64,000 nt of DNA from positions 186,001-250,000 of IMG/VR virus record IMGVR_UViG_3300026484_000007. One strand, given 5' to 3'. Numbering within the stretch: the first letter of the stretch is position 1; each line of letters begins with the position of its first letter. The notes under the pieces are model-generated. The model did no database searches. It worked only from the letters and a program-made list of their open reading frames with translations, and had not been told where the DNA came from. Below are positions 6,536 to 52,284 of this stretch, in pieces. Made by a program: the position numbers and the translations under genes.

Positions 6536-7291
6536 ATGAAAGCTACATTTTCAGAATTAATTTATGAAAGTTATCAATATTTTACAGAATCCACAAAAGG
6601 ATCTAAAAAAGATCACAAGAAAAAAACTACGAAAAAAAGTGGATCTAAACAATCCAAGCAACCTAAATATAGCGAGGATGGGAAATCTGTAGAAGATCAT
6701 TACAGTAAACAGAATACCGTTTTAGGAAATGCCGCAGAATGGGCTGATCCTACTAAAGTTGTTGCTTCTGGTGTTAGAGGTTATGAACTTGGTAAAAAAG
6801 TTGGACATCCAGTAGCTGGGACACTTTTAGGACCAGAAGGAGCAATCGGAGCAGCAAGTAATACTTACGACGATGTTAATCTTGGATCTGTTTATAATTC
6901 TAATGAATTACCAAGAAAAATTCTCGGTTATGGATTAGGAGGTGCTGCAGTTGGTACTGGTTTAGCGTTAATGGGTCATCCTATTCAAGATTTAGATGAT
7001 GCAATTAATCAAGCGAATCCAGTAGATGATCAATCTATTTTTGAAAAAGGATATAATTCCGTTAAAGACTTTTTTGCGCAAGATGCATTACAGAATGATC
7101 CTAAAGATGCTGCAAATATAGTTGGTAAAAGTGCTTTACTTGGAGGTGCTTTAGGTGTAGGTGCTGGAGCAACAATCCCAGCAATGAGATACGCTGGAGG
7201 AAAATTATTCTCTGGAGATCCATATAAAGCAAGACAATTAGCAGGAAATGATGTAAATAATAGATTTTATCCATACGTTGAAAGAGTATAA
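6536..7291 (+). CDS. glycine-zipper protein with processing-type leader
   Basis: MKATFSELIYE|S; GYGLGGAAVGTG and GGALGVGAG zippers. Confidence 0.75.
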   Translation: MKATFSELIYESYQYFTESTKGSKKDHKKKTTKKSGSKQSKQPKYSEDGKSVEDHYSKQNTVLGNAAEWADPTKVVASGVRGYELGKKVGHPVAGTLLGPEGAIGAASNTYDDVNLGSVYNSNELPRKILGYGLGGAAVGTGLALMGHPIQDLDDAINQANPVDDQSIFEKGYNSVKDFFAQDALQNDPKDAANIVGKSALLGGALGVGAGATIPAMRYAGGKLFSGDPYKARQLAGNDVNNRFYPYVERV

Positions 7292-7329
7292 AAAATATAA
7301 AAAAATATAAAAAAAATATAAAAATTATA

Positions 7330-7373
7330 AAAGTGATCCTTCCTGGATCACTTTTTTTGTCGTTAGAAAAAAA
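7330..7373 (+). terminator. intrinsic terminator with conserved tail
   Basis: AAAGTGATCC-TTCCT-GGATCACTTT hairpin + TTTTGTCGTTAGAAAAAA. Confidence 0.85.
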
Positions 7374-7396
7374 CGAAGATCAAAAAGGAAAAAATT

Positions 7397-7705
7397 ATGA
7401 ATACTTTATCATTTCTCAATAAAAGATCTAAAAGAGATCTTTTAAAAATTGAAGAAAATTTTAATAAAGCTGCAGATTCAGAATTTAAATCTGGGATTAT
7501 TGGTGGGGTTCTTGGAGCTGGAGCAGGATATTTCGTTGGAGATCAATTATCGCCTTGGTATGATCATAGCGAGTACGGAGCTAGTAATAATATTATTACT
7601 AATAATTTACATAAAGTTAGTACATTTGGCGGAATGGGAGTAGGAGCCGCAGCAGGAATCGCTGGCGGGACAAAGTTATCAAATGTTTTAAATAAGAATA
7701 AATAA
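7397..7705 (+). CDS. small glycine-zipper protein
   Basis: leader ...LLKIEE|N; GIIGGVLGAGAG and GGMGVGAAAGIAGG. Confidence 0.75.
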   Translation: MNTLSFLNKRSKRDLLKIEENFNKAADSEFKSGIIGGVLGAGAGYFVGDQLSPWYDHSEYGASNNIITNNLHKVSTFGGMGVGAAAGIAGGTKLSNVLNKNK

Positions 7706-7739
7706 AAATAAATAAGAATTAATTTTAAAAGGAGACACT

Positions 7740-11212: not shown

Positions 11213-12169
11213 ATGCCTAAACAATATCAACCTTTTTTAAGCACGATTGATGCTGCTTACAAAGATCTTCGATTTAAAATCGAAGGACGAGAACCGAAAA
11301 AAGTTATCGAAGAAGGTTTATTTCCTGAACCACCAGCGCAACCAACTAGAAAAATGGATCCTATTTCCAATGATTCTGATTCATCTAATATAGCTGGAAA
11401 ACTTGGACTAACGTTAGGTGGTCTTGGTCTAACAGCTTATGGAGCAAATGAATATTTTGATTCAAATGATGCGACTGATACACTTACGCAAGCTAAAGCA
11501 GATGCAAATGAAGTAGTCGATAAAGAAGTTCAAGCGAAAACGCAAGCAAATGTAAAAGATATAAATAATTTCCTTGCTACAAATAATCTAAATAAAATTC
11601 CTGAATATCATTCTAATAATTCTACAGTTTTTGCGAATACAAAAGAATCCGATTTAGCTCATAAACTTTACGTGGGTGGAGAAGGAATTGATACTGATTT
11701 TGAAAAAGCTTTAAATAAGTACCATCACGGAAATAAAGCATTAGTTGACTGGTTAACGAACACTGACGGTGGTTTCGAATGGGATAAATTATGGAAAGGA
11801 TCTTATGATTCTACTAGAAATAATTTATTAGAACAGTTAAAAGAAGCTAAAGCATATGCTGCTGGAAAACCAGTACCACTTAAAATGGGTCATTTAATTG
11901 ATTGGGGATTACATAATCCAGACAATGGAGCAGACGCATCCTCTCAAGCATATTGGGAAAGAGTAGCGAATGAAATACAATCGAAAATTAATAAATTGGA
12001 CGCAGCGGAACAAGAAATGGTTCATAATCTTAAACAACAATACTACGACAAATACATGGATGAACAATTGAAAGATAAATTACTTGCTTTCGATAAAGCT
12101 CATGGAGGCACTGGTAAATTTGATACAGTCGAAGAATTACGAGAATATCTTAAAAAACATAAAGGGTGA
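11213..12169 (+). CDS. glycine-zipper protein
   Basis: VIEE|G; GLTLGGLGLTAYG followed by hydrophilic domain. Confidence 0.75.
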   Translation: MPKQYQPFLSTIDAAYKDLRFKIEGREPKKVIEEGLFPEPPAQPTRKMDPISNDSDSSNIAGKLGLTLGGLGLTAYGANEYFDSNDATDTLTQAKADANEVVDKEVQAKTQANVKDINNFLATNNLNKIPEYHSNNSTVFANTKESDLAHKLYVGGEGIDTDFEKALNKYHHGNKALVDWLTNTDGGFEWDKLWKGSYDSTRNNLLEQLKEAKAYAAGKPVPLKMGHLIDWGLHNPDNGADASSQAYWERVANEIQSKINKLDAAEQEMVHNLKQQYYDKYMDEQLKDKLLAFDKAHGGTGKFDTVEELREYLKKHKG

Positions 12170-12424: not shown

Positions 12425-14290
12425 ATGGAGATCATTACTAATACGATAGACTATGCAAGGGAATATTTAAAATGTAAATTAAGTCCTTTGTATTTTATTG
12501 AAAATTATATTAAAATCCCAGTGCCTGGGGGTATAATTACTCAGCCGGAATCTGATATTTGGAATGCTACTCCCAAATATAGAGATCTTATAAAATTATA
12601 TATGGATGAGCAAATACAAAATATCGCTTTCCAAGCATCAAGACAGCACGCGAAAACAACAACCGTCGCTCAATTGGTGCTACATGCTTTAATTTTTTAT
12701 CCAAGAATGAAAATAGAAATGCTTACTCTTACTAAAAAGAATGCTGAAGATACAGTCGAAAGAATTCTTTTTATGCATAATCATTTACCAAAGTGGTTGC
12801 AAGTTGGATTTAAAGGAAAAGCAGATTATAAAACATATATCCTTTTCTCAAATGATTCAAGATTCAATACAAGATTTATTTCAGGGAATATTAGTCCTGA
12901 TACCGTTGCAAGGGGGATGTCTGTACCATTCTTATGGGTTGACGAAGCAGCTTTTATTCCTCATATGGAAGAAGCTTGGGCTGCTGCACAACCTGCGATC
13001 GCAACTGCTCGAAAATTCGCTCTTTTAAATAAGGTTCCTACAAAGATCATTATGACCAGTACACCAAACGGTGCAGGAGAAAATTTCTTTTATAAAACGT
13101 GGTCTCGTGCATGGGATTATACTGAAGTTATGGATCTCGAAAAAAGAAAAGTTGTTCCTAATGCTCAAGAAATATTGAATTCCAATCCAGATAAAAACAA
13201 CTTCGTTAAACTTAAAATTCATTGGAGTGAAACTGGTAAAACTGAAGAATGGTATCAAAGACAGATCAAAGAACTACAGTTCAATATGAGAAAAGTAAAC
13301 CAAGAGCTTAACTTAGTATTCTTAGGATCTGCTTTTACTATTTTCCCAGATGAAGTAATCGCTGAATTCAAACCCAAAAAAGAAATAAAAAAGATCGATA
13401 TAGGATACGGAAATTATTTTTCACTTTTTGAAGATATAGAAGAAATTCTTTCAGAAAATAAAGAAGAAGTATTTATTCTTGGAGTCGATACTGCAGTAAG
13501 TACCGCAGCAAAAGCCGATTATAGTGCGATAGTTTTAACGAAAGGATCTACTGGAGAACAGATCGGAGAATGGCACGGAAAAGTTTCAGTTCTTAAGAGA
13601 TACGGAATTATTCTTAAAAAATTAATTCTTAATTTACTTAAACATTTTGATTTAGATGAAGATAATTTTAAAGTAATTATAGAAAGAAATAGCATTGGTC
13701 TTAGTATCGTTGAAGATCTTCAATACGATGATGAATTTGATTTCGGAGCATTTTTATATCGAACGGAGATAAGAAAAGGAGAAAAAGCTCCTGGGATCGC
13801 TACAAAGAAAGATACTCGGGAAAAAATGTTTGATCTTTTATTATCAATCGTAAATGAAAATCCAGGAGTTGTTCAAGGACCATTAATTCAAGAAGAACTA
13901 AGAAATCTTGAACAGAAATCAAGTGGAAGAATTGAAGCTGGTAATGGGACTCATGATGATATTATTATGGCTTATAACTTTACTTTATTTGTCCGAGAAG
14001 AATTAATTAAAAATGGAATAATTGCTTCAAAACATTCTCCAAAACGTTTTGATAAAAATACTATTATTAATGACGTTGATGTAGCGCTTTCGTCGATCAA
14101 TAATTATCAGTCTTTTTTAGATACAAAATCAAAAAATGACGATTTTATTTTTACGACTGATTTTGAAAATGAAAAAGCAAAAAAAGACATAGAAAAATAT
14201 AAAAAGCAATTAATGAAAGAACTTACTCCGAAAGGTATGAATTATACGGAGGAAGAAGATATTATTGGATACGATATTATAGCTTTTTAA
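12425..14290 (+). CDS. terL: terminase large subunit (T4 gp17-like)
   Basis: Walker A SRQHAKTT, Walker B LWVDEAAF, motif III TSTPNG, nuclease LGVDTA...DYS, IERN, HDDIIMA. Confidence 0.95.
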   Translation: MEIITNTIDYAREYLKCKLSPLYFIENYIKIPVPGGIITQPESDIWNATPKYRDLIKLYMDEQIQNIAFQASRQHAKTTTVAQLVLHALIFYPRMKIEMLTLTKKNAEDTVERILFMHNHLPKWLQVGFKGKADYKTYILFSNDSRFNTRFISGNISPDTVARGMSVPFLWVDEAAFIPHMEEAWAAAQPAIATARKFALLNKVPTKIIMTSTPNGAGENFFYKTWSRAWDYTEVMDLEKRKVVPNAQEILNSNPDKNNFVKLKIHWSETGKTEEWYQRQIKELQFNMRKVNQELNLVFLGSAFTIFPDEVIAEFKPKKEIKKIDIGYGNYFSLFEDIEEILSENKEEVFILGVDTAVSTAAKADYSAIVLTKGSTGEQIGEWHGKVSVLKRYGIILKKLILNLLKHFDLDEDNFKVIIERNSIGLSIVEDLQYDDEFDFGAFLYRTEIRKGEKAPGIATKKDTREKMFDLLLSIVNENPGVVQGPLIQEELRNLEQKSSGRIEAGNGTHDDIIMAYNFTLFVREELIKNGIIASKHSPKRFDKNTIINDVDVALSSINNYQSFLDTKSKNDDFIFTTDFENEKAKKDIEKYKKQLMKELTPKGMNYTEEEDIIGYDIIAF

Positions 14291-14305: not shown

Positions 14306-15199
14306 ATGAAAAGAAAAAAACATTTAAAACATATAAAATACATAAATTATTTAAATGAAACTGCCACTATTGGAGCTCTAAATATAGGAAAAGCTGCAGC
14401 AATTGGAGCTGGGAAAGTAGGAGCCGCGACAGCCACCACTGGAGTTGCTTCTGGAGCTGGAACTGGAGCAACCGCAGGCGCAGGAATAGCTGGACTAAGC
14501 GCGTTAGGATTATCTGGTAAATTAATTAAGAAAACTTCAGAAGGATCTTTTAAAGATCACATTAGTAATTCAAACAATCAAAATATTTCTCAGAATATTC
14601 TAATGAAAGATAAAGAATTATATAATGAAATTTTCAATAAAACCAAACAGTTCGAAAATTCAAAAAATCTTTCAGGTGTTTATGATCACGGGACTACAGT
14701 AGGATATGGTAATGATGTTCGATTTTTAGAAGCTAGAGATTTTAAAGATTGGGCAAACGCAAAATCATTCGAAGGCACCCCATTTCAATCAAAATTTAAA
14801 CAATGGGCTTCTGATGGTAAATTTGATAAAAATGAACAACAAGAATTCGTCAATCTTGTAAATAAAAATCATTTAACTCCTGAGCAAATGAATACTATTT
14901 ACAAACATGAATTTGATGAAAGAATTTTACAATTGAAAAATACGTTAGCTAAAGAAGGTATCGATTTTAGCTCTTTACCTGCAAATGTAAAAAAAGTTTT
15001 AATTGATTTTAATTATAATGCCGGTACTGGAAATCTTTTAAAAACTTTAAAAGCAAAAGGATCTATTGAAGATCTAAAATCAGGCGATTATAATGATTTT
15101 GCTAACGATATTAAAACTAGTAATTGGTATAATAATTTTTTAAGTTCGAATATTGATAGACATCATTATATCGATGGAAATTTATCCGATTACGTTTAA
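14306..15199 (+). CDS. Gly/Ala-rich virion protein with C-terminal T4-lysozyme-like domain
   Basis: leader YLNE|T; TVGYG, FSSLPANVKKVLIDFNYNAG, SNWY. Confidence 0.75.
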   Translation: MKRKKHLKHIKYINYLNETATIGALNIGKAAAIGAGKVGAATATTGVASGAGTGATAGAGIAGLSALGLSGKLIKKTSEGSFKDHISNSNNQNISQNILMKDKELYNEIFNKTKQFENSKNLSGVYDHGTTVGYGNDVRFLEARDFKDWANAKSFEGTPFQSKFKQWASDGKFDKNEQQEFVNLVNKNHLTPEQMNTIYKHEFDERILQLKNTLAKEGIDFSSLPANVKKVLIDFNYNAGTGNLLKTLKAKGSIEDLKSGDYNDFANDIKTSNWYNNFLSSNIDRHHYIDGNLSDYV

Positions 15200-15237: not shown

Positions 15238-16800
15238 ATGATATCTAATCCAAAAGATTTAAAAAAATTTTCTAAAGATTTTGATTATACTCATTATCTT
15301 AATTATGATAGTGTTCCAAAAATGATTCGAATAGAAGAAGGAGCGGCTAAAGTTCTTGGAGCTGGAGCATTAGGGGCAGGAGCTGGAGCAGGTCTTGGAT
15401 GGTATTTAGGAGATCATGATTTAATCCCAAAAGATCTTGGGGAATTTTTAGGAAATCATGATAGTAAAATGCTTGTTGATAAAGATCAAGCAATTGTAAA
15501 TGAAGAACTTAAGAAGCAATTATTAAATGATGCATTAAAAAGAAATCAAAATGTATTAAATACTTATAGCGAACTTAATAAATTCGCAAATCCATTCAAT
15601 GGTAATCATACTAATGAACCAGAATATTTTAGAAATCATATTTATGATAAAACTAATCATACTTGGGGAGAAGCTGGCACTGAAGTAGTTCGTAAAAAAT
15701 TAATGCACAACATTCAAAATGAATTAAGTGCCATCAGATTAGAAAAAATGGATTTAATTAAGAAATATACTGAGCAAGTTAAACATCTTTTAGCTTTAAA
15801 AAATCAATTAACTCCTACAGATCAACAACTTGTTTTAAAATTAAAAAATGAATTAATGCAAGCTCAAAACGATCCTTCAAATAATTCTCTTGATTTAGTA
15901 AATAATACATATCAAAACTTAATCAAGCAATTTACTATAGACAATGCTTCCGCATCTGGTAAAAATGCAGAGATTCAAAATGTAATTGATACATTTAAGC
16001 AAGATATTGATGCTACTACAGCAAAACTTAATCAAGTGATGGATGCTGAAAAACATTATGAAACTGCTAATAAATATATTAATCAAGGTCAAATAGATAA
16101 AGCGATGAAAGAAATCACTAATCCAGATAAACCTATCATTGATCCGAAAAAAGGTTATGAAGGACAATACGATAATCCTTATCTAAAAACAGCTTATGAA
16201 GATATGACTAAAGATAGACAAATGCAAGCGTATGTTAATGCTTGGAATCATGAACATCCAGATGAAAAAATTGAATACGATTCAATTGCTAATAGATTCA
16301 AAGGAGGATTTTTCAAAGATCATCCTGAATTACAAGATAGAGAAAATTTATTAAAATATTTTAATGATCCTAAACATAAAGAGTTATTTGCTAATAAAGA
16401 TCATTTAAAAGATTACACTGAGAAAAATTTAGACGCGTCTAAATTTACAGAACATAAAACAATTAAGACTGCAGTCGATAAACAACCATTATTGACAAAA
16501 GAACAAGCGATAGGAGCAGGAGCTGCTCTTGGAGGGTTAACGCTTGGAGCGATGGCAGTCGATGATAAAAAAGAAAAATCTGAAGATTTCAATGGATTTG
16601 GAGCTCCTCAATACCCAAACCCAGCATTCCAACCAGTTCATCAACCACTTCAGCAGCCAGCGCAATTACAATTTAATTCCCCAGCGTATGGACAACCTCC
16701 AGTATTTAATACAACTCCAGCTGGAGCATTACCTGCGCCTCAACAAACACCAACTCCAACAGCTCAATCGATATTAAATCAAAAACAACCGAATTCTTAA
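15238..16800 (+). CDS. glycine-zipper protein (N- and C-terminal zippers, Pro/Gln tail)
   Basis: AAGGAG RBS favours ATG 15238; RIEE|G then GAGALGAGAGAGLG; GAGAALGGLTLG. Confidence 0.8.
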   Translation: MISNPKDLKKFSKDFDYTHYLNYDSVPKMIRIEEGAAKVLGAGALGAGAGAGLGWYLGDHDLIPKDLGEFLGNHDSKMLVDKDQAIVNEELKKQLLNDALKRNQNVLNTYSELNKFANPFNGNHTNEPEYFRNHIYDKTNHTWGEAGTEVVRKKLMHNIQNELSAIRLEKMDLIKKYTEQVKHLLALKNQLTPTDQQLVLKLKNELMQAQNDPSNNSLDLVNNTYQNLIKQFTIDNASASGKNAEIQNVIDTFKQDIDATTAKLNQVMDAEKHYETANKYINQGQIDKAMKEITNPDKPIIDPKKGYEGQYDNPYLKTAYEDMTKDRQMQAYVNAWNHEHPDEKIEYDSIANRFKGGFFKDHPELQDRENLLKYFNDPKHKELFANKDHLKDYTEKNLDASKFTEHKTIKTAVDKQPLLTKEQAIGAGAALGGLTLGAMAVDDKKEKSEDFNGFGAPQYPNPAFQPVHQPLQQPAQLQFNSPAYGQPPVFNTTPAGALPAPQQTPTPTAQSILNQKQPNS

Positions 16801-21889: not shown

Positions 21890-21890
21890 T

Positions 21891-35728: not shown

Positions 35729-35779
35729 TCTTTTTTAGATCACTCTCTAGCTTTTTTTGTCATTAGATAATTTTTCCTG

Positions 35780-35918: not shown

Positions 35919-35974
35919 CTTTTTCATTTTTTAAAAAATTGAATTTTTTAAACGAAGCCAAAAAAGGATTTTTT

Positions 35975-37338: not shown

Positions 37339-37348
37339 AGGATAAAAT

Positions 37349-37756
37349 ATGGCTAATAAAAATTATACAGTTGGCCTTGATAAAAAATATTTAGATCTAG
37401 TTGACGCAGATCTAACTCCAGAAAATCAAAGATTTTTAAATGATTACGTTGCTAAAAAATTAAGAATGATAGATAACACTATCATCGCAAATCATCTTAA
37501 AAAAATGGATCAAGAAGCTTCTCATTATAAAAATCTTGATAACTTTGAAAAACAAGAGATAATTAATTCCGAAAGATGGAAAAATCCATTGATCGGTGCA
37601 ACTATTGGAGGAGCTCTTGGTTTTGGACTTACTGATGTAATCAGTGGAAATCCTACGACCGATGGAATATTTGGCGCTCTTGGGTTAGGAGTTGGAGCTT
37701 ATCAAGGTAAGAAATATACTGATTTTAAATTAAAAAGGCAAGGATTGATAAAATGA
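37349..37756 (+). CDS. glycine-zipper protein
   Basis: GATIGGALGFG and GIFGALGLGVG. Confidence 0.75.
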   Translation: MANKNYTVGLDKKYLDLVDADLTPENQRFLNDYVAKKLRMIDNTIIANHLKKMDQEASHYKNLDNFEKQEIINSERWKNPLIGATIGGALGFGLTDVISGNPTTDGIFGALGLGVGAYQGKKYTDFKLKRQGLIK

Positions 37757-39260: not shown

Positions 39261-39294
39261 AAAATTATATAAAATTTAAATCAAAGGAAAATCG

Positions 39295-40047
39295 ATGTTA
39301 TCGAAAGACAAATTTAATAAATATTTAAAAATTGAAAATAATACTGTAATTGCAAAAGCACCTATCCGAATCGATCTTGATCTTTCAGAATACAAAAATA
39401 TATCGGAAGAATTTGATACGGATAATGATTCTGGAATTGCAGAGACTGCTAATGGAGTTTATGAGATTCCAGGATTTTTTACTTTAGAAATTCTTGATAA
39501 TGATAAGAATATCGTTGATAGTATTCAATTCTTTTTCCCATACAACGTATACTTATTAGGATCAAATAATTCTGAAATTAGTAGTACAAGATTTTTAATG
39601 GAATACGAAGAAGGGGATTCAATATTCTTCGCGAAATTTAAAAAACAAGAAACTGATATTAGAATTCTTGACAAATTATTTGAAAACGGGATAAAATATC
39701 TTAGTACAAGAATGGATTTCTTAATTTATAATATTTGGAAACAAGTTGAACCAACGATTAACGTTCCTTGGCATCACTTTGAAGTAATTGTTTCTCAATT
39801 GTATGGTAAAAGAGTTGAAGGAGGACATTACGTTCCTTTACGATTAACTAACGAAGAGTATTCTAAAAAATATGCTTTAAATACTAAACAAGCAGCGCAC
39901 TATTTTGGAGAATCAAGTGGATTCTTATATGGATATAGTAATGATGCGTTATTGACTAGTGTTTCTAAAGATAAAACAGTTCCGAAAAAATATAGACCAG
40001 ATTATTATATGGAAAAATTAATTGCCGGAGAAGTTAATGAAGTTTAA
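39295..40047 (+). CDS. RNA polymerase beta' C-terminal fragment
   Basis: INVPWHHFEVIVSQL resembles RpoC INDKHIEVIVRQM; C-terminal EKLIAGE resembles ENVIVG. Confidence 0.7.
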   Translation: MLSKDKFNKYLKIENNTVIAKAPIRIDLDLSEYKNISEEFDTDNDSGIAETANGVYEIPGFFTLEILDNDKNIVDSIQFFFPYNVYLLGSNNSEISSTRFLMEYEEGDSIFFAKFKKQETDIRILDKLFENGIKYLSTRMDFLIYNIWKQVEPTINVPWHHFEVIVSQLYGKRVEGGHYVPLRLTNEEYSKKYALNTKQAAHYFGESSGFLYGYSNDALLTSVSKDKTVPKKYRPDYYMEKLIAGEVNEV

Positions 40048-40152
40048 AAACTTATAAAGTTTAAAAGTGATCTAAAAAAGATCACTTTTAATTTTTTTTG
40101 TCTTTAGCAAAATTTTAGCGAAGTTCTATCGAAGTCAATAAAAAAACTTTTG

Positions 40153-40281
40153 AAAACTTGAGTTTCCAGAACGTTGAGCTTCTATAGATATCTAAAGATA
40201 TATAGCAGTTCTAAAAATTTTAGAACTGCTTTTATATCGCTTGTATCTAAAAAAGATGCTACGTGGAAAATCAAAGTTTTT
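40153..40281. repeat. ~130-bp intergenic repeat, reverse orientation
   Basis: near reverse complement of 2234-2361; follows terminator 40061-40112. Confidence 0.9.
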
Positions 40282-40343
40282 CAAGTTTTAAATTTAAAAA
40301 AATACAAAGAAAGAAAAAGAAAGAAAATTAAAAGGATAGTTAA

Positions 40344-41999
40344 ATGAAATTAGATCAATTATTAATGAAACAAAAAACATCTTTGAAAGACTCAGCATTT
40401 CCAGCTTTATTCGCTGGCGACGAAATTACTATAAGTTATTTACCTGAGATCGGAGCATCCGGAATAAATTTTATTAATAAATTAAGAAAGAAAAATATTT
40501 TCAATGAAGTTCTTATTTATCCATATTATACCCTTGGAGCGAAAAAAATTATTTCTAAAGATTACATTGCAGATTTTAAAAAATTAAATCCAAATATAAA
40601 GACTGTTTATAAATTTAAAACTTTCATGAAAAACAGAGCAAACGTGATCGATCTAACTCCACTGATGGATCTTTTTTCGATCCTAATCAATCAGCAGCCA
40701 AAATTTAAAGTTTTAAATGAAACGATTGATGCTATAAATAATTATTTTACTGAGAATGTATCTTCCCAAGATCCTACTGGAGAAAAACATTTTATTTTCG
40801 TGGATTGTAATTCTAAAAGCAATTTTAATTTCTTAGATTCTATTTATAGATTATTTAGAAAAAAAGCTTTCAAACTCAATCATGATCTTTTAAAGATCAA
40901 AGGTTTATTTGTAATAGCTTTAAACGAATCTGAAGAATTTGATATTTATCCATTAATCCATAAAAAAGAAAAACATTTAATCTTTCGACCTGATATTTAT
41001 AGATTAATCAAAAAAGATCTTACTGGGATCGAAGAAGAAGAAATAAACGAATTCGTTGATTCATATGAAAAAATCAATGAAGCTAGAAATAATATTTTAA
41101 ACATTACTGATAAACTTTTAAATAAAATTGGGAAAGGATCTGCAAAAGATTCGAAAGAGACTGCAGACTTTCTAAATCAATTAGGAAATGCTAAAGAAAG
41201 ATTTGAAAACTACATCGATTTAATTTATCAAGAATTATCAAGTAATGATATTCCTGGAAATGATTATATAGAAAAACTTCATCGTTTATTTCCGAAAGAC
41301 ACGACGGATCCAAAAAAGATCCAAAAGATTGAAAAATTAATTTCTTACATAGATGATCTTAATAAGATCTATAATGGATCAATTAAAATAAAAAAAGATT
41401 TAATTAATAAATCTGCTGATATTTATTATGATCCAATGGAGATCGTTAAGTTAGATGAAATTTCTGTTTATAATAAGCAGAAAACAGAATTCGATGAAGT
41501 GCTAGATAAATCAATGTTTGATTTAATTAAAAGTATTGAGCGAGATAAAGATGCAGGAATTGAAGTTCTTGATATTAAAGTAGAAGTTCAAGACACTAAT
41601 AAAAGTAGATTTAAAAAATACAAAGTTAAATTAAAGAATACTAAGTTCGGTAAAAAAACTCCATACGAAATAGAATTTCTTACTCCGTATCCTATCAAAG
41701 GAAAATATTTAAAAATAGGTGGAGTAAGATACATAATGTTAAATCAATTTATGGCTAAACCTATTTTAAAAATTAAGCCTAACATTGTAAGATTATATAC
41801 TCACTTCAGTACTTTCTCAGTAACTTTAAAAACTCATAAATATAATAATACTCAAGATTTCCACGAGATCTTAATGAAAGTTACTTCTAGTATAAAAGGA
41901 TCTAAAATAGATTACGTCGAATCTACTAACAATGATCCGCGCGAAAAATATAAATTTTATATCGATAGAACTTTTATAGATAAAACTATAGAATTATAA
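40344..41999 (+). CDS. RNA polymerase beta N-terminal fragment with long N-terminal extension
   Basis: PYPIKGKYLKIGGVRYIMLNQF resembles RpoB [22 protein letters not shown]. Confidence 0.65.
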   Translation: MKLDQLLMKQKTSLKDSAFPALFAGDEITISYLPEIGASGINFINKLRKKNIFNEVLIYPYYTLGAKKIISKDYIADFKKLNPNIKTVYKFKTFMKNRANVIDLTPLMDLFSILINQQPKFKVLNETIDAINNYFTENVSSQDPTGEKHFIFVDCNSKSNFNFLDSIYRLFRKKAFKLNHDLLKIKGLFVIALNESEEFDIYPLIHKKEKHLIFRPDIYRLIKKDLTGIEEEEINEFVDSYEKINEARNNILNITDKLLNKIGKGSAKDSKETADFLNQLGNAKERFENYIDLIYQELSSNDIPGNDYIEKLHRLFPKDTTDPKKIQKIEKLISYIDDLNKIYNGSIKIKKDLINKSADIYYDPMEIVKLDEISVYNKQKTEFDEVLDKSMFDLIKSIERDKDAGIEVLDIKVEVQDTNKSRFKKYKVKLKNTKFGKKTPYEIEFLTPYPIKGKYLKIGGVRYIMLNQFMAKPILKIKPNIVRLYTHFSTFSVTLKTHKYNNTQDFHEILMKVTSSIKGSKIDYVESTNNDPREKYKFYIDRTFIDKTIEL

Positions 42000-42020
42000 A
42001 TTAATCATAAAGGACAAAAT

Positions 42021-45000
42021 ATGATCAAAAAAGATACGTCTGATGCTACATTAAAATTAAAATCTGCAAAATTTTATATAGATTTTCATAATGAAAAAAA
42101 TAATAAATTATTTTTTTATGAAGTTTATTCTAAGAAAAAAGGAACTGCTGGAGCAGAGCGTCTCGAATACGCTTATATGACTCCAGACGACGAAGTGATC
42201 TTTTACAAACCCATCGATGATATCGAAGAGCATGAAATACCAAAGAAAGATCTTCGAGAGTTTCTTCTTGGTAGAATTAATAGCATAGCGATGTTAAAAT
42301 TAGGAGCTAGAGTTGATATTAAATCAAAATCTTCTAAACCTACTTTTAAAATTAAAGCGTTGAGCAATGAACCCGAAGTAATTCTTTTTGCTAGTATTAT
42401 TTTAGGATTAAGACCTGCGCTAGATTTCATGGGAATAAAGTATAGTTTTAATAAGACTAAAGAAGGTTATAAATCTATAAAACTATCCACTCAAGATGGT
42501 AAAACTAAATATTTTAATATTTATGCTAACTCTTTATACGATGAATACGTTTTAAATGGAATGTCTTCTTTTATTAAGAAAATTGAATTCACTGAAGAAA
42601 ATTTATCTTCTAAAGATGTATTCATAACTTATTTCGATAATCGTTTTGGTAAAGGTTTATTTAATTCTTATAATCAAAAGTTAGTATCTTTTATAGATAC
42701 AACGACTGAGCAAATTTTAAGATCGTATGGTTATAGTACGGATCCATTAAAATTATTATGTATAACTATGCCTAAGAAAATACTAAACGAAGCAGTCGAT
42801 GATATCGATAATCTTGAAAATAAAAGAATTAGAATGGCTGAAAGTATTGCTCACTCAGCTTATAATGCAGTTTCGCAAGCTCTTGTAAAATTCAAGAAAG
42901 AATCTAAATTAGATAACGTTAAATTACATATTCAAAAAGATTATATTATTAATAATCTTATTAACACTGGTATGGTTCAATGGAGTAATCCAGTTAACCC
43001 ATTAGAAGAATTAACTACTTCTGCAAAAATTACTAAAACTGGGGTTGGGAATCCATTAAAAGAACAGATCACTATAGACAAAAGGGATCTTAATGAAAGT
43101 TATTTTGGAGTTGTATCTGCGACACATACTAATGAGTACGGTGGAATAGGTTTAAACCAAACTCTCGTAAATAAAATGATGATCAAAGATAGATTCGGAA
43201 GTATTTTAATTAAAAAATTCCAAGATACTAATCCTTTTGAAATACTAAGTCCAATTGAAAGTATTGCTCCATTTATGGATACAGATGATACTACTAGAAA
43301 AGTTATGGGGAATCAGCAAACCTCACAATTCATTCAAGTTAAAAATCCAGATGTTCCTCTTGTTCAAACTGGTTTTGAAGCTTATATACCTTATATAGTA
43401 TCTGATAGATTTGCAATGAAAGCTAAAAAACCTGGAACTGTTAAATTAGAAAAAGACTATATTATAATGAAATACAATGATGGTTCTGAAGAAATCTTTA
43501 GTACTAAACCCACTAAAGCGAGAACTAAAAGAGGTCTTTATATTCCAATTGAATATAACGTTCTTGTAAAAGATGGTCAAAAAGTAAAAGAAGGAGAAAT
43601 CCTTGCAGCAACTAATTCTTTAAAACACGGAAAATTAGGTATAGGAAAAAATTTAGTAGTCGCAGAAATGTCTTATCGAGGTATGAATTACGAAGATGGT
43701 TGGGTAATATGCGAAGACCTTAAAGAAAAATATCAAAGTTCTTTATATGAAAAAATTACTATAATTATTCCAGAAGGTGCTAAGATTCAAGATTTTAATA
43801 TTGAATTAAATAAAAACACTAAACCTGGAGAAAAATTAATTTCGTATGTTACAAACGCAACTGAGTCTTTAGAATTCGATGAAGAAAATAGTATTACTGA
43901 TGAAAATACTGATGATTTAAGTACAGGTAAAGAGATTAGAGGTAATACAGTAACTTACTATAGTATCGGTGGACAAATTGCAGATTTTGTAATAAAATTA
44001 AATTCTACTAAAATTGATAAAAAAATTATAGAAAAATTTAAATTTCAAAATTCAGAAATTGAAAAAAAATTAAAGATTTGCGAAAAACTCAAAAATGAAA
44101 TTAATAAATTAGATTGTAGAGATAACATTGAACATCTTGAAGCTCTTGAAGTTGGTGGACATAAAGCAAATAAAATGGAGCCAGAAGGAGCGATTATTGA
44201 AGTCTATATCGAAACAGAAAATCCAATCAGAAACGGATCAAAATTTACTTTAGCGAGTACTGGTGGTAAAGGTACTGTACAATACATTATTGATAAAGAT
44301 AAAAAACCTTATACAAAAGAAACTGGATTAGAAATTGATTTTATTGCGACTCCGTTGTCAATCATTTCAAGAAAAAACCCAAGTATTATTTTACAATTGT
44401 ATCTTGGAAAAGTAATTTATTTTCTAAATAAAAAAGTTGAAGAATTAGCTAAAGAAAATAAAATTTCTTCGGTTAGAACTTTAATTACTAAAGTATTTGA
44501 AAGAATTGATAAATCAGATGATAAAGTTTATCTAAATCAATTAAAAGGATTCTTAAAAAATAAAGATGATTTTCTTAAAAAATATATTTTAAAACATGAT
44601 CCTTTAAATAACCCAGCTTTCCCAGCAATTATGCCTCCATTCGGAAGTAAATTAAGTACGAAAGATATCGAAGATGCTGCAGATATTCTTGGAATTCCTT
44701 TACAAGAACATGTAATAATTCCAGAAGAAGATAATAAAGAGACTAAATATAAAGTTACTGTTGGAATTATGCCAGTATTTTATTTAGAACATTTTCCAAA
44801 AGCTATGTCAGGGGTAAGAGGAAGTATTAATGTTAAAAATCAATTAACGACTGGACAAGGTCGTGCCGGAACTAAAGAAGGAAACGGAGCAATTAAACTT
44901 GGTTTATATGATATGTTTTCCGTTACATCAAGACGAGCAAATAAGTTCATTAAAGAAATGTGGGCAGTAAAATCAGATGATTACGAAGCGAAAAAAGAAC

Positions 45001-45140
45001 TTCGAAAGAAAATCATTAAATCAGCCGAAACTGGCGAAGAAATAAATGTTTCTGATATTGAAGTAAAACCAGAAGATATTACTACCAAAAAATTGATTGA
45101 AGCATATTTTTATGGAGCATGTTTGCAGCCACGTTTCTAA
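42021..45140 (+). CDS. RNA polymerase beta main fragment
   Basis: HTNEYGGIGL, DDTTRKVMGNQQTSQ, GMNYEDG, GSKF...GGKGTV, SRKN, LEH, KSDD. Confidence 0.95.
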   Translation: MIKKDTSDATLKLKSAKFYIDFHNEKNNKLFFYEVYSKKKGTAGAERLEYAYMTPDDEVIFYKPIDDIEEHEIPKKDLREFLLGRINSIAMLKLGARVDIKSKSSKPTFKIKALSNEPEVILFASIILGLRPALDFMGIKYSFNKTKEGYKSIKLSTQDGKTKYFNIYANSLYDEYVLNGMSSFIKKIEFTEENLSSKDVFITYFDNRFGKGLFNSYNQKLVSFIDTTTEQILRSYGYSTDPLKLLCITMPKKILNEAVDDIDNLENKRIRMAESIAHSAYNAVSQALVKFKKESKLDNVKLHIQKDYIINNLINTGMVQWSNPVNPLEELTTSAKITKTGVGNPLKEQITIDKRDLNESYFGVVSATHTNEYGGIGLNQTLVNKMMIKDRFGSILIKKFQDTNPFEILSPIESIAPFMDTDDTTRKVMGNQQTSQFIQVKNPDVPLVQTGFEAYIPYIVSDRFAMKAKKPGTVKLEKDYIIMKYNDGSEEIFSTKPTKARTKRGLYIPIEYNVLVKDGQKVKEGEILAATNSLKHGKLGIGKNLVVAEMSYRGMNYEDGWVICEDLKEKYQSSLYEKITIIIPEGAKIQDFNIELNKNTKPGEKLISYVTNATESLEFDEENSITDENTDDLSTGKEIRGNTVTYYSIGGQIADFVIKLNSTKIDKKIIEKFKFQNSEIEKKLKICEKLKNEINKLDCRDNIEHLEALEVGGHKANKMEPEGAIIEVYIETENPIRNGSKFTLASTGGKGTVQYIIDKDKKPYTKETGLEIDFIATPLSIISRKNPSIILQLYLGKVIYFLNKKVEELAKENKISSVRTLITKVFERIDKSDDKVYLNQLKGFLKNKDDFLKKYILKHDPLNNPAFPAIMPPFGSKLSTKDIEDAADILGIPLQEHVIIPEEDNKETKYKVTVGIMPVFYLEHFPKAMSGVRGSINVKNQLTTGQGRAGTKEGNGAIKLGLYDMFSVTSRRANKFIKEMWAVKSDDYEAKKELRKKIIKSAETGEEINVSDIEVKPEDITTKKLIEAYFYGACLQPRF

Positions 45141-48746: not shown

Positions 48747-49255
48747 ATGAATTACTTTGAAAGAGTAAAATTACATGAAATTTGCGAAAGTGTAAAAGAA
48801 ACTTATCTTTTAAATAGCATCGAAGAAAATGCTAATGAAATCGAAGTTCTAAGAACTAAAAAATTCTTAACTGAAACATTTAATACAATTGAAAAATTAT
48901 TAATTGAAGAAGCAATTGCTGATGGTGTAAAAAAAGCAGCAATTATTGGAGCAGCAGGGTTAGCTGGAACAGCTGCAGGTTATGAACTTGGTCATGCTGC
49001 TGATGCAGGGGAATTAGCAGCGGGAAAGTAATTGATCCAGCTGCCCCAGAAGAAGTTGTAGTTGATAAAAATTTAATTACTGCAGATGACGTTGAAAAGC
49101 GAGAGATGAATGCTTTTGCGTTATCTGACTTATACAAACTTGCTCAGCAAAATCCTAATGCTGTTTTATATGGAGGAGCGTTAGGAACAGCTGGGTTAGC
49201 TTCTGGTGCAGTCGCTGCTCAAGCAATGAATTCTCAGAATCCAAGAAGTAGATAA
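48747..49255 (+). CDS. glycine-zipper protein read through a -1 frameshift (94-aa short form ends 49031; ~169-aa long form)
   Basis: G GGA AAG TAA at 49022-49031; -1 frame open to TAA 49253-49255 and encodes second zipper YGGALGTAGLASG. Confidence 0.7.
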
Positions 49256-49352
49256 AAATTATAAAAATATGGAGTTGTGATCTTTTTTAGATCGCTCTCC
49301 AGTTTTTTTGTCGTTAGAAAAAATTCTGAAAAAATTCTGAAAAAAATTATAA

Positions 49353-49491
49353 AAAACTTGAGATTCGCGGACGTTGCGCTTCTGTAGATATCTAAAGATA
49401 TATAGCAGTTCTAAAATTATCAGAGTGGTTTTAGAACTCGTATATATCTTTGTGTATCCAAAATAGATGCTACATAGAAAATCAAGTTTTT
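49353..49491. repeat. ~130-bp intergenic repeat, reverse orientation
   Basis: GTTCTAAAA-ttatcagagtgg-TTTTAGAAC core; follows terminator 49270-49323. Confidence 0.9.
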
Positions 49492-49635
49492 CAATGTTTT
49501 CTTTTGATTGATTTTGATTAAGATTAATTTTAATTTTAATTTTAATTTTAATTAAATTTTATTTATAGCCAAAATCGATCTAACGAAGATAAAAATCTTT
49601 AATTTAAAAATAATATTATATACTAAGGAGAAATA

Positions 49636-50478
49636 ATGAGTCTTTATACTTTAATTGAAGAAGCTTATAATTCTAAAGAAAAAGCTCTCGCGACAATGGG
49701 ACTTGGTGCTCTTGGAGCAGGAGTAGCTGCATATCATGGTCATAGCGTTGATCAATTAGATAATTTGATAGATAAAGAAACTGGATTAACCGATTTAGAA
49801 GCGAATAACTTTAGAGCAGACGCTGCTTTATCAAAAGATGGAATACTAGGGAAAGTGAAAGGAGTTTTTGATTTATCTACTGGTAAATTAGATCCTCGAG
49901 AATTAGCTAAAGCTTATCAAACAGATCCAGATGTTAAAAATTTAATAGATGAAAAACTAGATCCTGAAAGCAAAAAATATATATTAAAAATTATGAATCT
50001 TCAAGATAAATTCAATGATCATCTTTTTCATATTGAGAATGATAAAAAAGAATTACCTGGGGTATTTAATGGTCATGCAAACGCAACTGCTTACGGAGCA
50101 GCAGGATTAATGGGTGGGGCAGCTCTTGGAGCAGCAGCGACATCAGATACGCTTAATCCTAAAAAAGAAACTAAGCAGTTAAAGAAAATTGAAAAAGATT
50201 ATGAAAAAATTTTAAAAGATAAGCAAAAGCTAGCAGAAGAGCTTGAAAAAGAAAAAGCTTTACAATCGACTGTAAAAGATTATCATTTAGAGTCGACTCC
50301 AGCGCCTCCAGCGCCTCAAGCGCCTCAAGCTCAACCAGCGCCAGTTCAGATACCATTTCATCCAAACGTTCAATATTATTATGATCCATTAAATCCATAT
50401 GGTTTACCAGCTCAATCTACACAACCTACCCAACCTATTCAACCTATTCAACCTATTCAACCTACTTTATTAAGATAA
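49636..50478 (+). CDS. glycine-zipper protein (N- and C-terminal zippers, Pro/Gln tail)
   Basis: MSLYTLIEE|A; GLGALGAGVAA; GAAGLMGGAALG. Confidence 0.8.
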   Translation: MSLYTLIEEAYNSKEKALATMGLGALGAGVAAYHGHSVDQLDNLIDKETGLTDLEANNFRADAALSKDGILGKVKGVFDLSTGKLDPRELAKAYQTDPDVKNLIDEKLDPESKKYILKIMNLQDKFNDHLFHIENDKKELPGVFNGHANATAYGAAGLMGGAALGAAATSDTLNPKKETKQLKKIEKDYEKILKDKQKLAEELEKEKALQSTVKDYHLESTPAPPAPQAPQAQPAPVQIPFHPNVQYYYDPLNPYGLPAQSTQPTQPIQPIQPIQPTLLR

Positions 50479-50496
50479 CTTTTAAAGGAATTAATT

Positions 50497-52284
50497 ATGA
50501 AAAACGAGAAAAAAGAAATGAATTTTAAACCAAAAAAATTTAGAGAAATCGAAGAAAGTTTTTTAAAAAATCTTGGATTATATGGTGGATTGGGAGCAGC
50601 AGGAGCTGCTGCTGCAATCTATGGAAACGATCATTGGGATCCGAATGCGACTCATACTGAAGTTGTTGAAAAAGTAAAACATGGAGTAGGCGCGACTGGG
50701 GATAAAGCTGCATGGGACGCGCATGTAAAAAAGGAAAATGAATTTATAAATAATGAAACAGCTTCCGATTTTAATAAATTAATGAAGGGTAATTTTAGTA
50801 ATTCTAAGAACGATTACCAGGAATACCTAAAACAAACAGAGACTATCGATGATTTTAGAAAACTGACACCAGAACAGCAAAAACATTATATTCTTAGCTT
50901 AGCGGGATATGATTTCGATCATCCTGAAGCTTCTAAAAATACTTTAGCATTAAAGTTTGCTCAAGATTTTTATGCTCAAGAATTAGCTAAACAGTATCCT
51001 GAGGCTAAAAACCCTGAAATTTTTCAAACTATGGCTAAGAATTTCTTTGATAATAATAATACTAATGATACTTGGATGTTTAATAAAGATAATAAATTCG
51101 TTCAAGCTCAAGCAGGAGCTGAAAATTCATTCAACGATGCTTTAAAATTAAACAGTCCTAAAATTGATTTTAAAAATGATTGGACTACTTTTACTCAAAA
51201 TAAAAATCAAGATTATATGAACATGGGAAGAATTTTATCAACAGTTGATGGAAATGGTAATGATAATGGCAACAATTTAGTAAATTTTGGAGATTTTATT
51301 AAAAAAGATGGAACGTTTGATTTCAATAAAGCTTCGCAATTTTATAATGGAGATGTTAATAAAGTTAAAGAATTATATAAAACATTTATCGATGCCGCTG
51401 ATACTGACGCAGGCGATACGTTTTCAGGAGACAATATTAAAAATAAAAATCCTTACCCAAATCCGAATGGATTTTTTGATCATATTTCAAATTATTTTTC
51501 AAAAGGTAATATGCCTTTTAATAAAATTAATTCCATTGATGATTTAAAAGCTTGGAATGAAAAACTTTTAGAGACACAACCAAATGCTGCAAAAATATCA
51601 AATTATGATGCTGTTTATAGTGGATTTTTTAATCCTGATACTATGCATCCAGCTGGAACATTAAACAGTTCTCAAGGGACTGATCTTGATTCTAATTTAG
51701 ATTTTTCAAAATTAACTTTAAAAAGCGATACTACGACACCGTCACCTGTAAAAACAGATTTTGATCAATTCAATAAAAAATATGAATCCTATAAACCATA
51801 CGGAGACCAGGCAAATATTTTTATAAAAAACTGGAGTAATTCTACTGTCTTTGATGGACAAGGTAATGTAAAAGATACAGATTCTGTAGTTAATCCAAAT
51901 GAAAAGTGGAGAGAATTTGATTATGATAAAAATGGTAAGATAGATGAAAAAGATTTTGAAGCTTTTAAAAAGTCGGACGAATATCATAAAAAATTAGAAG
52001 AATACAGAAACAAACATCATTCTGAATACGAAAAAAAATTTTTAGAAAATTATAAAGGCAAAATTCCCGAAAAATATAATCCGGGGCATGATGAAATAAT
52101 CAAAGAAAAGAAAGAAGTAAAAGGTATTACTACTAAACCGATGGCTGGTCTTGTAGGAGCTGGAGCTGGACTTGCTGCAGCAGGTATAAGTTCTGCAATC
52201 GCTAACGCAGCAAAAAAACCTAATCATTCGCAGTTCCCAGCTCATCCAACGTATTCGCCGTATCCAGCATATCCTCATAGATAA
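50497..52284 (+). CDS. large glycine-zipper protein with EF-hand loop
   Basis: EIEE|S; GLYGGLGAAG; DYDKNGKIDEKD; GLVGAGAGLAAAG. Confidence 0.8.
   Translation: MKNEKKEMNFKPKKFREIEESFLKNLGLYGGLGAAGAAAAIYGNDHWDPNATHTEVVEKVKHGVGATGDKAAWDAHVKKENEFINNETASDFNKLMKGNFSNSKNDYQEYLKQTETIDDFRKLTPEQQKHYILSLAGYDFDHPEASKNTLALKFAQDFYAQELAKQYPEAKNPEIFQTMAKNFFDNNNTNDTWMFNKDNKFVQAQAGAENSFNDALKLNSPKIDFKNDWTTFTQNKNQDYMNMGRILSTVDGNGNDNGNNLVNFGDFIKKDGTFDFNKASQFYNGDVNKVKELYKTFIDAADTDAGDTFSGDNIKNKNPYPNPNGFFDHISNYFSKGNMPFNKINSIDDLKAWNEKLLETQPNAAKISNYDAVYSGFFNPDTMHPAGTLNSSQGTDLDSNLDFSKLTLKSDTTTPSPVKTDFDQFNKKYESYKPYGDQANIFIKNWSNSTVFDGQGNVKDTDSVVNPNEKWREFDYDKNGKIDEKDFEAFKKSDEYHKKLEEYRNKHHSEYEKKFLENYKGKIPEKYNPGHDEIIKEKKEVKGITTKPMAGLVGAGAGLAAAGISSAIANAAKKPNHSQFPAHPTYSPYPAYPHR

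Follow-up and report, generated by a model that had tools for sequence, protein, structure and literature searches.

Leader-bearing glycine-zipper proteins of a hydrothermal-vent jumbo phage: candidates for a protease-processed class of ejected head proteins

Comparison with known systems

The internal proteins of phage T4 are diverse except for a conserved capsid-targeting sequence; the prohead protease removes this leader, and the proteins are ejected together with the DNA (PMC3012670). The giant phages phiKZ and SPN3US have a virion RNA polymerase, head proteins cleaved after Glu, and paralogous sets of ejected proteins whose genes are partly clustered (10.1101/2024.03.24.586471; PMC10052503; PMC13282480). 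S80 proteases cut after Glu with Ala, Ser or Gly at P3 and remove N-terminal propeptides of 20-254 residues from head and ejection proteins, and one of them, SPN3US gp245, also cleaves its own C-terminus (PMC10052503). Glycine zippers are known from Tde1, a type VI secretion (T6SS) effector that needs its GxxxG zipper for membrane permeabilisation and for target-cell entry after contractile injection, and from the type VII secretion system (T7SS) toxins TelE and EsxX, which use the motif in the same way; all three permeabilise the target cytoplasmic membrane (PMC10240207). Here we describe a set of leader-bearing glycine-zipper genes in a 64,000-nucleotide stretch of DNA (the window), bases 186,001-250,000 of the 272,602-bp IMG/VR virus record IMGVR_UViG_3300026484_000007 (~97% complete, 27% GC), whose source is, judging by its genes, an uncultivated jumbo phage distant from every isolate. 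This phage, found in hydrothermal-vent metagenomes, has about 15 such fast-evolving genes. We give an even chance to the reading that their products are internal head proteins, targeted and processed by way of the leader, ejected with DNA and polymerase, and acting through their zippers on the inner membrane of the recipient cell. Processing and packaging alone are likely, and, if packaging is granted, membrane action is probable.

The T4 internal proteins (IPI, IPII, IPIII and Alt) likewise join a short, portable or conserved leader ending in (L/I)xE to highly diverse cargo, and the T4 leader MKTYQEFIAE is similar in style to MSLYTLIEE of the vent phage. The two systems differ in the protease (gp21 in T4, a Peptidase_S80 of the phiKZ gp175 type here), in the leaders, which reach 55 residues here and may contain several sites, and in the glycine-zipper cargo, which occurs in no T4 internal protein. 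With phiKZ and SPN3US the vent phage shares giant size, an S80 protease and, presumably, a virion RNA polymerase, but the predicted P3 residue here is Leu or Ile, as for T4 gp21, instead of Ala, Ser or Gly; PF12699, chimallin and tubulin were not detected in this genome, and phiKZ has no match to the profile of the zipper module described below. The T6SS and T7SS effectors resemble the set in being soluble, injected proteins with repeated, weakly hydrophobic GxxxG helices, but lack sequence homology with it and carry a single terminal motif, whereas here two zippers bracket a cargo for which we propose delivery by the capsid. The Pfam Gly-zipper 2TM/YMGG type (SlyB/Pcp outer-membrane lipoproteins) also has two consecutive zipper helices forming a hairpin; the proteins described here differ in scoring below the curated cut-off, in having no lipoprotein signal and, in most members, in a loop of 100-500 residues.

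The logic of targeting and processing is already known from T4 and from phiKZ/SPN3US; an ejected class bearing zippers, to which these proteins most likely belong, is not known to have been described for giant phages. No literature linking "glycine zipper" with "jumbo phage" was found, and the two papers that combine "glycine zipper" with "bacteriophage" and "virion" have titles and abstracts on other subjects. A 2026 jumbo-phage review lacks the terms "transmembrane" and "ejection proteins", and those of its passages on early phage infection (EPI) vesicles that were consulted name no phage-encoded membrane component. An early membrane-bound compartment is seen in phiKZ-like phages (PMC13282480), and the set would bear on how giant-phage proteins pass or reshape the host membrane and on which phage proteins build that compartment.

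The zipper gene set

An initial annotation of the window had listed 12 open reading frames (ORFs) as an expanded family of glycine-zipper proteins with swappable central domains. All 12 were found at the coordinates that it gave, on the + strand, each with an AAGGAG-type ribosome-binding site. The start of 15238 is confirmed as the ATG at that position, which has a Shine-Dalgarno site upstream; an upstream TTG is not the start. Genes are named by their first base in the window, and numbers after "zipper" are residues of the protein.

6536..7291, + strand: 251-residue zipper protein; leader MKATFSELIYE, long basic N-region, zippers 128-148 and 195-217, basic tail; matches the module profile.
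7397..7705, + strand: 102-residue minimal unit; leader ..LLKIEE, zippers 32-48 and 73-95, D/H patch, 24-residue loop, tail NVLNKNK.
11213..12169, + strand: 318-residue protein; leader ..KKVIEE, one zipper 61-78, hydrophilic C-domain; matches the module profile.
14306..15199, + strand: 297-residue protein; basic leader ..YINYLNE, Gly/Ala/Thr-rich segment of ~55 residues at 19-75, muramidase-like domain at ~100-297.
15238..16800, + strand: 520-residue protein; 34-residue leader ..RIEE, zipper 1 beginning at the predicted new N-terminus (GAAKVLGAGALG..), GDHD patch, 363-residue orphan helical centre, zipper 423-442, Pro/Gln tail.
33595..34326, + strand: 243-residue protein; 45-residue acidic leader with three xE sites, ending NLIEE, zipper 46-69 at the predicted new N-terminus, DHSHMHD patch, 143-residue centre, zipper 213-240, tail NRR.
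37349..37756, + strand: 135-residue protein without the leader motif; 80-residue N-domain, tandem zippers 83-100 and 104-119, basic tail.
37753..38496, + strand: 247-residue protein; leader ..KDLLEE, zipper ~75-86, YDVHD patch, two EF-hand-type loops, zipper 216-232, basic tail.
38493..39260, + strand: 255-residue protein; leader ..TLNYLNE, zipper 20-42, YDAHLDH patch, two EF-hand/dockerin-type loops, weak second Gly/Ala segment ~196-206, Pro-rich tail.
48747..49255, + strand: zipper gene with a conserved 55-residue leader with several motif sites; frame 0 (48747-49031) encodes 94 residues with one zipper.
49636..50478, + strand: 280-residue protein; 9-residue leader MSLYTLIEE, zipper 19-35, HGHSVDQLD patch, 113-residue centre, zipper 149-170, then 110 residues of coiled coil and a Pro/Gln tail; best match to the module profile.
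50497..52284, + strand: 595-residue protein; basic leader ..FREIEE, zipper 25-44, NDHWD patch, 503-residue orphan centre, zipper 548-567, basic/Pro tail.

The common architecture that had been claimed for most of them is confirmed. Two zippers around a variable centre are present in nine of the 12 (6536, 7397, 15238, 33595, 37349 with its tandem pair, 37753, 38493, 49636 and 50497); 11213, 14306 and 48747 have a single zipper, and 37349 has no leader motif. The centres are indeed mutually unrelated: one is a probable muramidase, and others are EF-hand pairs or orphan helical domains. Common descent could not be demonstrated: BLASTP with SEG filtering found no pairwise homology within the set, which is better called an architecture class with few paralog pairs. 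Only 37753/38493 (E = 8e-6) and, more weakly, 33595/15238 (E = 0.005, with a common THYL..IEEGA leader and WNxEH motif) look like paralogs. No obvious Sec signal was seen in any of the 12 ORFs, as judged by eye only.

A composition scan (windows of 17 residues with 5 or more Gly, 10 or more small residues and no more than 1 that is polar or charged) was matched by 20 of the 291 ORFs of the genome. Fourteen of these lie in the window between 6536 and 59315, and three further zipper genes adjoin the protease and capsid genes (genome 7451-9169, 9208-9843 and 14343-15005); the remaining matches are Gly/Ser low-complexity proteins. All genes of the set are located on the + strand arm of the genome. 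The motif (G/A/S)xxxGxxx(G/S/T), of the class of Kim et al., matched 61 times in the 5,892 residues of the set and 138 times in 77,135 residues elsewhere, a six-fold difference in density (10.4 vs 1.8 per 1000 residues). The Gly/Ala-rich proteins 38493, 50497 and 11213 gave 0 or 1 matches to this strict expression, and 38493 and the protein at genome 9208 gave none. Following zipper 1, an aromatic-Gly-Asp/His patch aligns across 11 sequences, with the variants GDHD, MDHSHMHD, HGHSVDQLD, NDHWD, YDVHD and YDAHLDH. No member reaches the gathering threshold of the Pfam glycine-zipper domains (PF13441, PF13488, PF05433). The best is 7397, which scores 27.3 bits on Gly-zipper_YMGG (PF13441), just below the 28.9 cut-off, and also matches PF05433 weakly; the others score far lower or are absent.

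Gene 48747 probably has the two-zipper architecture as well, through a change of reading frame. Its frame 0 ends in ..GCG GGA AAG TAA, in which the heptamer G_GGA_AAG (49022-49028) stands in X_XXY_YYZ phase directly before the stop. The -1 frame is open for 74 codons to 49255 and encodes a linker, then a second zipper and finally NPRSR as the tail; the whole product would have ~168 residues. A separately called ORF of 49 residues (49106-49255) falls inside this extension; its ATG has no good Shine-Dalgarno site, and it is probably the -1 frameshift extension of 48747. We regard the heptamer as a candidate programmed -1 frameshift site of the lambda G/GT type. Only 2 of the 13 copies of G_GGA_AAG in genes are in slippery phase. 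The region is identical in four assemblies, and a variant from a fifth sample has three downstream substitutions that leave the frame open. The 74-nt spacer is ~40% GC, and no strong downstream RNA structure was found at the site.

A T(T)AAACGAAG motif was observed 20-66 nt upstream of ~18 genes of the + arm and of only 2 genes of the - arm, often after a GATC-containing terminator hairpin. In the window it precedes 6536, 7397, 9792, 11213, 15238, 31427, 35975, 46227, 49636, 53346 and 54804, and elsewhere genome positions 7451, 22126, 30966, 42820, 76343 and 250495. It is a candidate late promoter common to zipper genes, one polymerase gene and other genes of the structural arm.

Leader motif and prohead protease

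Within the first 60 residues, the motif [LI][EN]E occurs in 13 of 17 zipper proteins and in 48 of the 274 other proteins (Fisher p = 6e-7). A strict form (a hydrophobic residue, (L/I), (E/N) and E, with a small residue after it) has 53 occurrences across the proteome. Of these, 30 fall within the first 80 residues, against an expectation of 27%; the P1' residue at the listed sites is G, A, S, N or T. The motif also occurs in three proteins of head assembly encoded on the same arm.

Genome 6204-7040, + arm: Peptidase_S80 prohead protease; 33.8 bits (cut-off 23.4), phrog_207 at E = 2e-19, with matches to head-maturation-protease PHROGs.
Genome 12513-14075, + arm: capsid protein, weakly gp23-like.
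Window 61697..64000, + strand: T4 gp20-like portal; Pfam Portal_T4 42.8 bits (cut-off 22.9), N-terminus with KLKILQE|A.

The capsid protein contains AMILEE|ANS at residue ~75, which reads AMLIEE|ANS in a relative with 84% identity, and has LILE|N and FVTE|N in its start region. The ~75 site lies about where T4 gp23 is cut and suggests a capsid propeptide of ~75 residues. In the protease, motif sites lie near the N-terminus and at residues 200 and 232 of 278. The latter suggest that the enzyme trims its own C-terminus, which would match the C-terminal self-cleavage reported for SPN3US gp245. Since the same motif occurs near residue 75 of the capsid protein and at the protease C-terminus, the leader motif is probably where the prohead protease cuts. 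The enzyme's family is assigned by a profile match, and we infer its specificity from the matching site in the capsid protein.

For ten or more proteins, from this phage and its relatives, the predicted cut leaves a zipper 0-13 residues from the new N-terminus, and some predicted new N-termini begin with a Gly/Ala-rich peptide, as in IEE|GAAKVLGAGALG and LNE|AGLGKIMAIGGG. By analogy only, this recalls class I viral fusion peptides, where cleavage exposes an N-terminal, Gly/Ala-rich, moderately hydrophobic peptide; one zipper starts with AVGIGA, like the fusion peptide of HIV-1 gp41. These systems differ in having no homology to the set, in the heptad-repeat machinery that is absent here and in their biological setting.

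The N-terminal motif was also noticed in several non-zipper ORFs: 8031-9152 (YLEILNE|A), 9792-10553 (MVIFLNE|S), 21617-21889 (MNEVINE|A), 47483-48316 (QLINE|N) and 48348-48710 (IINE|A). These may be further protease-processed head or ejection proteins.

Leaders and cargo in related phages

The RNA polymerase beta' fragment at 34376-35728 has more than 100 metagenomic homologs. Four related contigs, L011 and L013 (58-61% identity), L017 (~43%) and L026 (flanking genes 43-49%), all encode proteins of the leader and zipper build. Examples from relatives are a 95-residue protein with the order MKFRYLNE|AGLGKIMAIGGGLAGAG..DFMHD..second zipper..KPKK..RYNR, a 206-residue protein with ..KLLIIEE|N.., and P0121, 330 residues, in which ..KLIEE|G.. 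is followed by a DHH patch, a 250-residue centre, a second zipper and RKKK.

The zipper genes of the relatives are not orthologous to those of the window. Surrounding genes are 45-60% identical, and the zipper genes occupy different slots between these conserved genes. The leader of 48747 is 58% identical over residues 1-62 to that of one L013 paralog and 56% identical over residues 7-54 to that of the other, whereas the downstream parts differ. In L026, two adjacent genes open with the identical 15 residues MNQEAQYKIEKLIEE, one continuing into a zipper cargo and the other into an unrelated non-zipper cargo of 139 residues. Among the relatives, then, only leaders are conserved, and by these comparisons leaders are portable between cargoes. 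A portable leader joined to a variable cargo is the pattern described for T4 internal proteins (PMC3012670).

Cargo domains

ORF 14306 probably carries a muramidase domain of the T4-lysozyme/pesticin type. Its Pfam matches, Pesticin (E = 1e-3) and Phage_lysozyme (E = 0.055), are both below cut-off, and a sequence search of the PDB found nothing. It has an Atlas feature score of 0.92 with structure template-modelling (TM) values of 0.61/0.79. An AlphaFold2 model of residues 85-297 had a predicted local distance difference test (pLDDT) score of 53, and its top 50 Foldseek PDB matches were T4 lysozyme or fusions of it, at E >= 0.14, which gives a weak hint of a lysozyme fold. By eye, E117, D127 and T131-VGYG resemble the lysozyme catalytic motif. 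SAR (signal-anchor-release) endolysins are like 14306 in having a basic N-terminus, a weakly hydrophobic Gly/Ala-rich segment and a muramidase of T4-lysozyme type, which in 14306 is a probable one. They differ from it in that its Gly/Ala/Thr segment is ~55 residues long and scores +4.7 to +6.9 kcal/mol, that it has a YLNE motif like other members of the set, and that it adjoins the terminase gene.

EF-hand-type loops are found in 37753 (EF-hand_5, 26.2 bits against a cut-off of 25.9) and 38493 (Dockerin_1, 29.7 bits against 22.9). Canonical DxDxDG loops occur twice in each of these proteins and once in 50497, and make up 5 of the 11 loop-like matches genome-wide. Together, the probable muramidase and the EF-hand/dockerin loops suggest cargo of extracytoplasmic character. 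The centres of 15238 and 50497 are orphans: homolog searches with either found only the query itself, ESM Atlas gave nothing for either centre, and tblastn of 15238 against isolate phages found no match.

A further EF-hand-type loop was noticed in an 811-residue ORF at genome 9848-12283, which adjoins the capsid gene and starts MANYINE|S.

Proposed pathway and membrane action

In the pathway that we favour, the proteins would be made late as soluble precursors with an N-terminal leader of 9-55 residues, which, like the T4 capsid-targeting sequence, would carry them into the prohead core. There the S80-family protease would cut after the Glu of (L/I)-(E/N)-E and before a small residue, so that in ten cases or more the new N-terminus would lie 0-13 residues from a zipper helix rich in Gly and Ala. 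The mature unit would run from zipper 1 through an aromatic/Asp/His patch and a variable, acidic domain (3-503 residues) to zipper 2 and would end in a short tail, either basic or Pro/Gln. The zippers would be too weakly hydrophobic to enter the membrane of the producing cell, so the proteins would remain packageable; such weak hydrophobicity fits a protein kept soluble for packing into the capsid. At infection the proteins would leave the capsid together with the DNA and the virion RNA polymerase, and the zippers would engage the inner membrane of the recipient, oligomerise through their GxxxG faces and permeabilise or remodel it. The basic tails would be drawn to the cytoplasmic side, and the acidic centres (a probable muramidase, Ca-binding EF-hand pairs, orphan helical domains) would lie in the periplasm. 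In all nine two-zipper proteins the net charge of the centre lies between -15 and 0, being negative in eight, and that of the N- and C-terminal tails between 0 and +5; cargo types and charge together suggest that the centres may be periplasmic and the tails cytoplasmic.

The initial annotation had proposed capsid-packaged proteins that insert as helical hairpins after ejection, forming a DNA-entry conduit, a membrane compartment or pore-forming effectors. Its packaging claim gains from the Peptidase_S80 protease, from the motif in capsid protein, protease and portal, and from the portable leaders, with cleavage and packaging themselves predicted from these features. The hairpin step has to be qualified. 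On a Hessa-type scale (approximate scale values; best 19-residue window per zipper) the zippers score +3.5 to +9 kcal/mol, too little hydrophobicity for stable bilayer insertion. If membrane-active, they would by analogy act like effector glycine zippers or fusion peptides and not as hairpin anchors. A conserved conduit is the least likely of the three functions, as the zipper genes belong to variable islands and lack conservation between relatives even where the flanking genes are 45-60% identical; fast evolution and variable islands indicate an accessory host-interface arsenal and not a fixed conduit. Pore-forming or permeabilising effectors fit best, and a membrane compartment is possible. 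A more ambitious version, which we think quite unlikely, is that the capsid protease primes at least 12 two-zipper proteins by giving each a fusion-peptide-like Gly/Ala zipper as its new N-terminus, and that after ejection the mixed set co-assembles in the host inner membrane. It would build a pore or patch through which, or a vesicle in which, infection by the genome and the virion RNA polymerase would start, with muramidase and Ca-binding domains in the periplasm.

Dozens of proteins enter the host along with the DNA of a giant phage. The set offers a code for targeting and cleavage that can be read, a mature unit of ~80 residues at its smallest, and cargo inserted by nature. Should the code hold, foreign proteins could be loaded into giant-phage capsids by means of the leader, as is done with the T4 capsid-targeting sequence, and the zipper unit would then be a new kind of self-delivering membrane module. 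Co-assembly, if true, would for the first time supply a set of candidates for the membrane components that giant phages themselves encode for their early membrane compartments, and also a phage counterpart of glycine-zipper effector translocation. Should the proteins turn out to be capsid filler or lysis proteins, they would still form an unusual lineage-specific expansion in vent phages.

Alternative explanations

Several observations weigh against ejected, membrane-active head proteins. We infer cleavage, packaging and ejection from motifs in an uncultivated phage, and membrane action and topology are likewise proposed. The loose motif [LI]xE lies in the first 60 residues of 161 of the 274 other proteins, and only its stricter forms discriminate. 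Many leaders are Lys/Arg-rich and thereby also compatible with the n-region of a signal anchor. The zipper scores contrast with the -4.5 to 0 kcal/mol of the phage's ordinary transmembrane proteins, and stable insertion as single transmembrane helices is unlikely by this measure. A single-sequence AlphaFold2 model of 33595 (pLDDT 43) had both zippers helical and was otherwise uninformative, and a four-copy complex prediction of mature 7397 (residues 21-102) scored 0.00 with a pLDDT of about 37, which is evidence neither way. The module profile (A1), searched against 1.84 billion representatives, gave 14 matches, among which P0121 was the only protein of the same architecture outside the genome, the other 13 being proteins of this genome, repetitive or unexamined matches; it had no credible match in PBS1, phiR1-37, S6, JD-Fnp7 or phiKZ. 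The phiKZ_IP domain (PF12699) has no match at E <= 1 anywhere in the genome and none in the Pfam scans of the members.

The evidence for packaging applies equally to proteins that are packaged and processed but not membrane-active, their zippers serving as packing faces of an internal capsid structure (inner-body-like, a core or a DNA-spacing filler) and the proteins acting in the cytoplasm or being discarded after ejection. Zippers too weakly hydrophobic for classical transmembrane helices would suit this, as would centres that are helical, of low complexity and fast-evolving, like internal proteins, and D/H patches and EF-hand loops that could bind the divalent cations accompanying packed DNA. 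We nevertheless consider it unlikely, given that a capsid core offers no evident use for acidic centres with basic tails or for a zipper at the predicted new N-terminus, that the phiKZ_IP domain is absent, that the muramidase cargo points to envelope action and that known glycine zippers of such composition are mostly membrane-active (PMC10240207). It is also conceivable that there is no single system and that unrelated proteins share Gly/Ala-rich low-complexity segments by convergence or compositional drift, as the lack of pairwise homology with SEG, the unrelated centres, the poor fit of some members to the strict zipper expression and the non-orthologous members of the relatives would allow. 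This is very unlikely: in a Lys/Asn/Ile-rich proteome at 27% GC, Gly-rich helices, which need GC-rich codons, are found in a single gene class only; leader motif, zipper and patch form an ordered module that can be aligned in 11 proteins and is seen again in relatives from other samples; and two pairs of paralogs are present.

A different topology would follow if the proteins were late envelope proteins outside the virion, with a SAR-like signal anchor, an exported centre and a zipper 2 that re-anchors the chain, serving in lysis, lysis control or superinfection exclusion. SAR domains are Gly/Ala-rich, basic n-regions are present in 7397, 14306, 37753, 38493 and 50497, the charge pattern fits an N-in, centre-out, C-in topology, and EF-hand/dockerin loops and a probable muramidase are extracytoplasmic in type. 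The case is strongest for 14306, the sole lysozyme-like match detected in the genome, which may be a SAR-type endolysin or simply the endolysin. For the set as a whole we hold the chance of this explanation to be small. Leaders are acidic or without a basic n-region in 33595, 48747, 49636, 6536 and L026, and an acidic E-E or N-E always stands between n-region and helix. The same motif occurs in capsid protein, portal and protease, and in L026 an identical leader precedes a non-zipper cargo. The zippers (+3.5 to +9) are far less hydrophobic than the phage's own membrane proteins and than real SAR domains, which score about +1, and it would be unusual to find fifteen genes for lysis or exclusion dispersed between those for the head and the polymerase.

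Genome context

The same phage or near-identical strains are present in hydrothermal-vent metagenomes from separate studies of 2018 and 2025, including an independent assembly of 272,083 bp, and one metatranscriptome run contains a small share of the phage's sampled words. Similarity to known phages is low. The large terminase shares 27.5% identity with its counterparts in T4-like cyanophages. For the RNA polymerase beta-like protein, identity with the proteins of Staphylococcus phage S6, Yersinia phage phiR1-37, Fusobacterium phages and PBS1 is 22-27%. A 7-kb stretch had no blastn match among isolate phages, a terminase search of viral contigs found no relative, and the capsid protein found, among metagenome contigs, only its own genome and one fragment of 84% identity. 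The + strand arm spans 188 kb to the record end plus 0-78 kb and has portal, terminase, protease, capsid and one set of polymerase genes. Zipper genes of the window lie among the following features.

12425..14290, + strand: large terminase; PHROG phrog_2, E = 5e-32; zipper genes 11213 and 14306/15238 on either side.
31427..45140, + strand: split, phiKZ-like RNA polymerase beta/beta' genes (31427-32875, 34376-35728 and 42021-45140); zipper genes 33595, 37349, 37753 and 38493 interleaved.
54804..59315, + strand: ORF of 1503 residues; zipper-like at 165-200 and 1181-1202, with a truly hydrophobic stretch at 1166-1229; membership of the set uncertain.

The phiKZ-type split beta/beta' genes occur in two sets, the + strand set of the window and a paralogous - strand set at 117-125 kb, presumed by analogy with phiKZ to be virion and non-virion polymerases. 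ORF 54804-59315 has no match among PHROG or Pfam families. It lies directly upstream of the gene for a virion structural protein and that for the portal, and its product may resemble a tape measure or be a giant ejection protein; the sole comparable zipper of phiR1-37 sits in the annotated tape-measure protein.

Membership of the nucleus-forming phages (Chimalliviridae) and of the phiKZ inner-body type was considered and rejected, with no chimallin, tubulin or phiKZ_IP detected. The Tubulin Pfam family (PhuZ) has no match in the genome, and a phiKZ gp54 (chimallin) query found nothing there in a single-sequence search of limited sensitivity.

The N-terminus of the beta' fragment 34376-35728 is ~65 residues longer than that of nearly all of its ~110 homologs, which have 375-400 residues and whose alignments begin at residue ~70; this could be an extension or a mis-called start. 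Past the end of the window, at genome ~258,000-270,300, lie at least five paralogous ORFs, some of them BLAST-related, with an N-terminal CxxxCxxC typical of radical SAM proteins (CNMNCDYC, CNMNCKYC, CNFNCSYC, CSLNCPYC and CNLACPMC), a cluster that is unusual for a phage.

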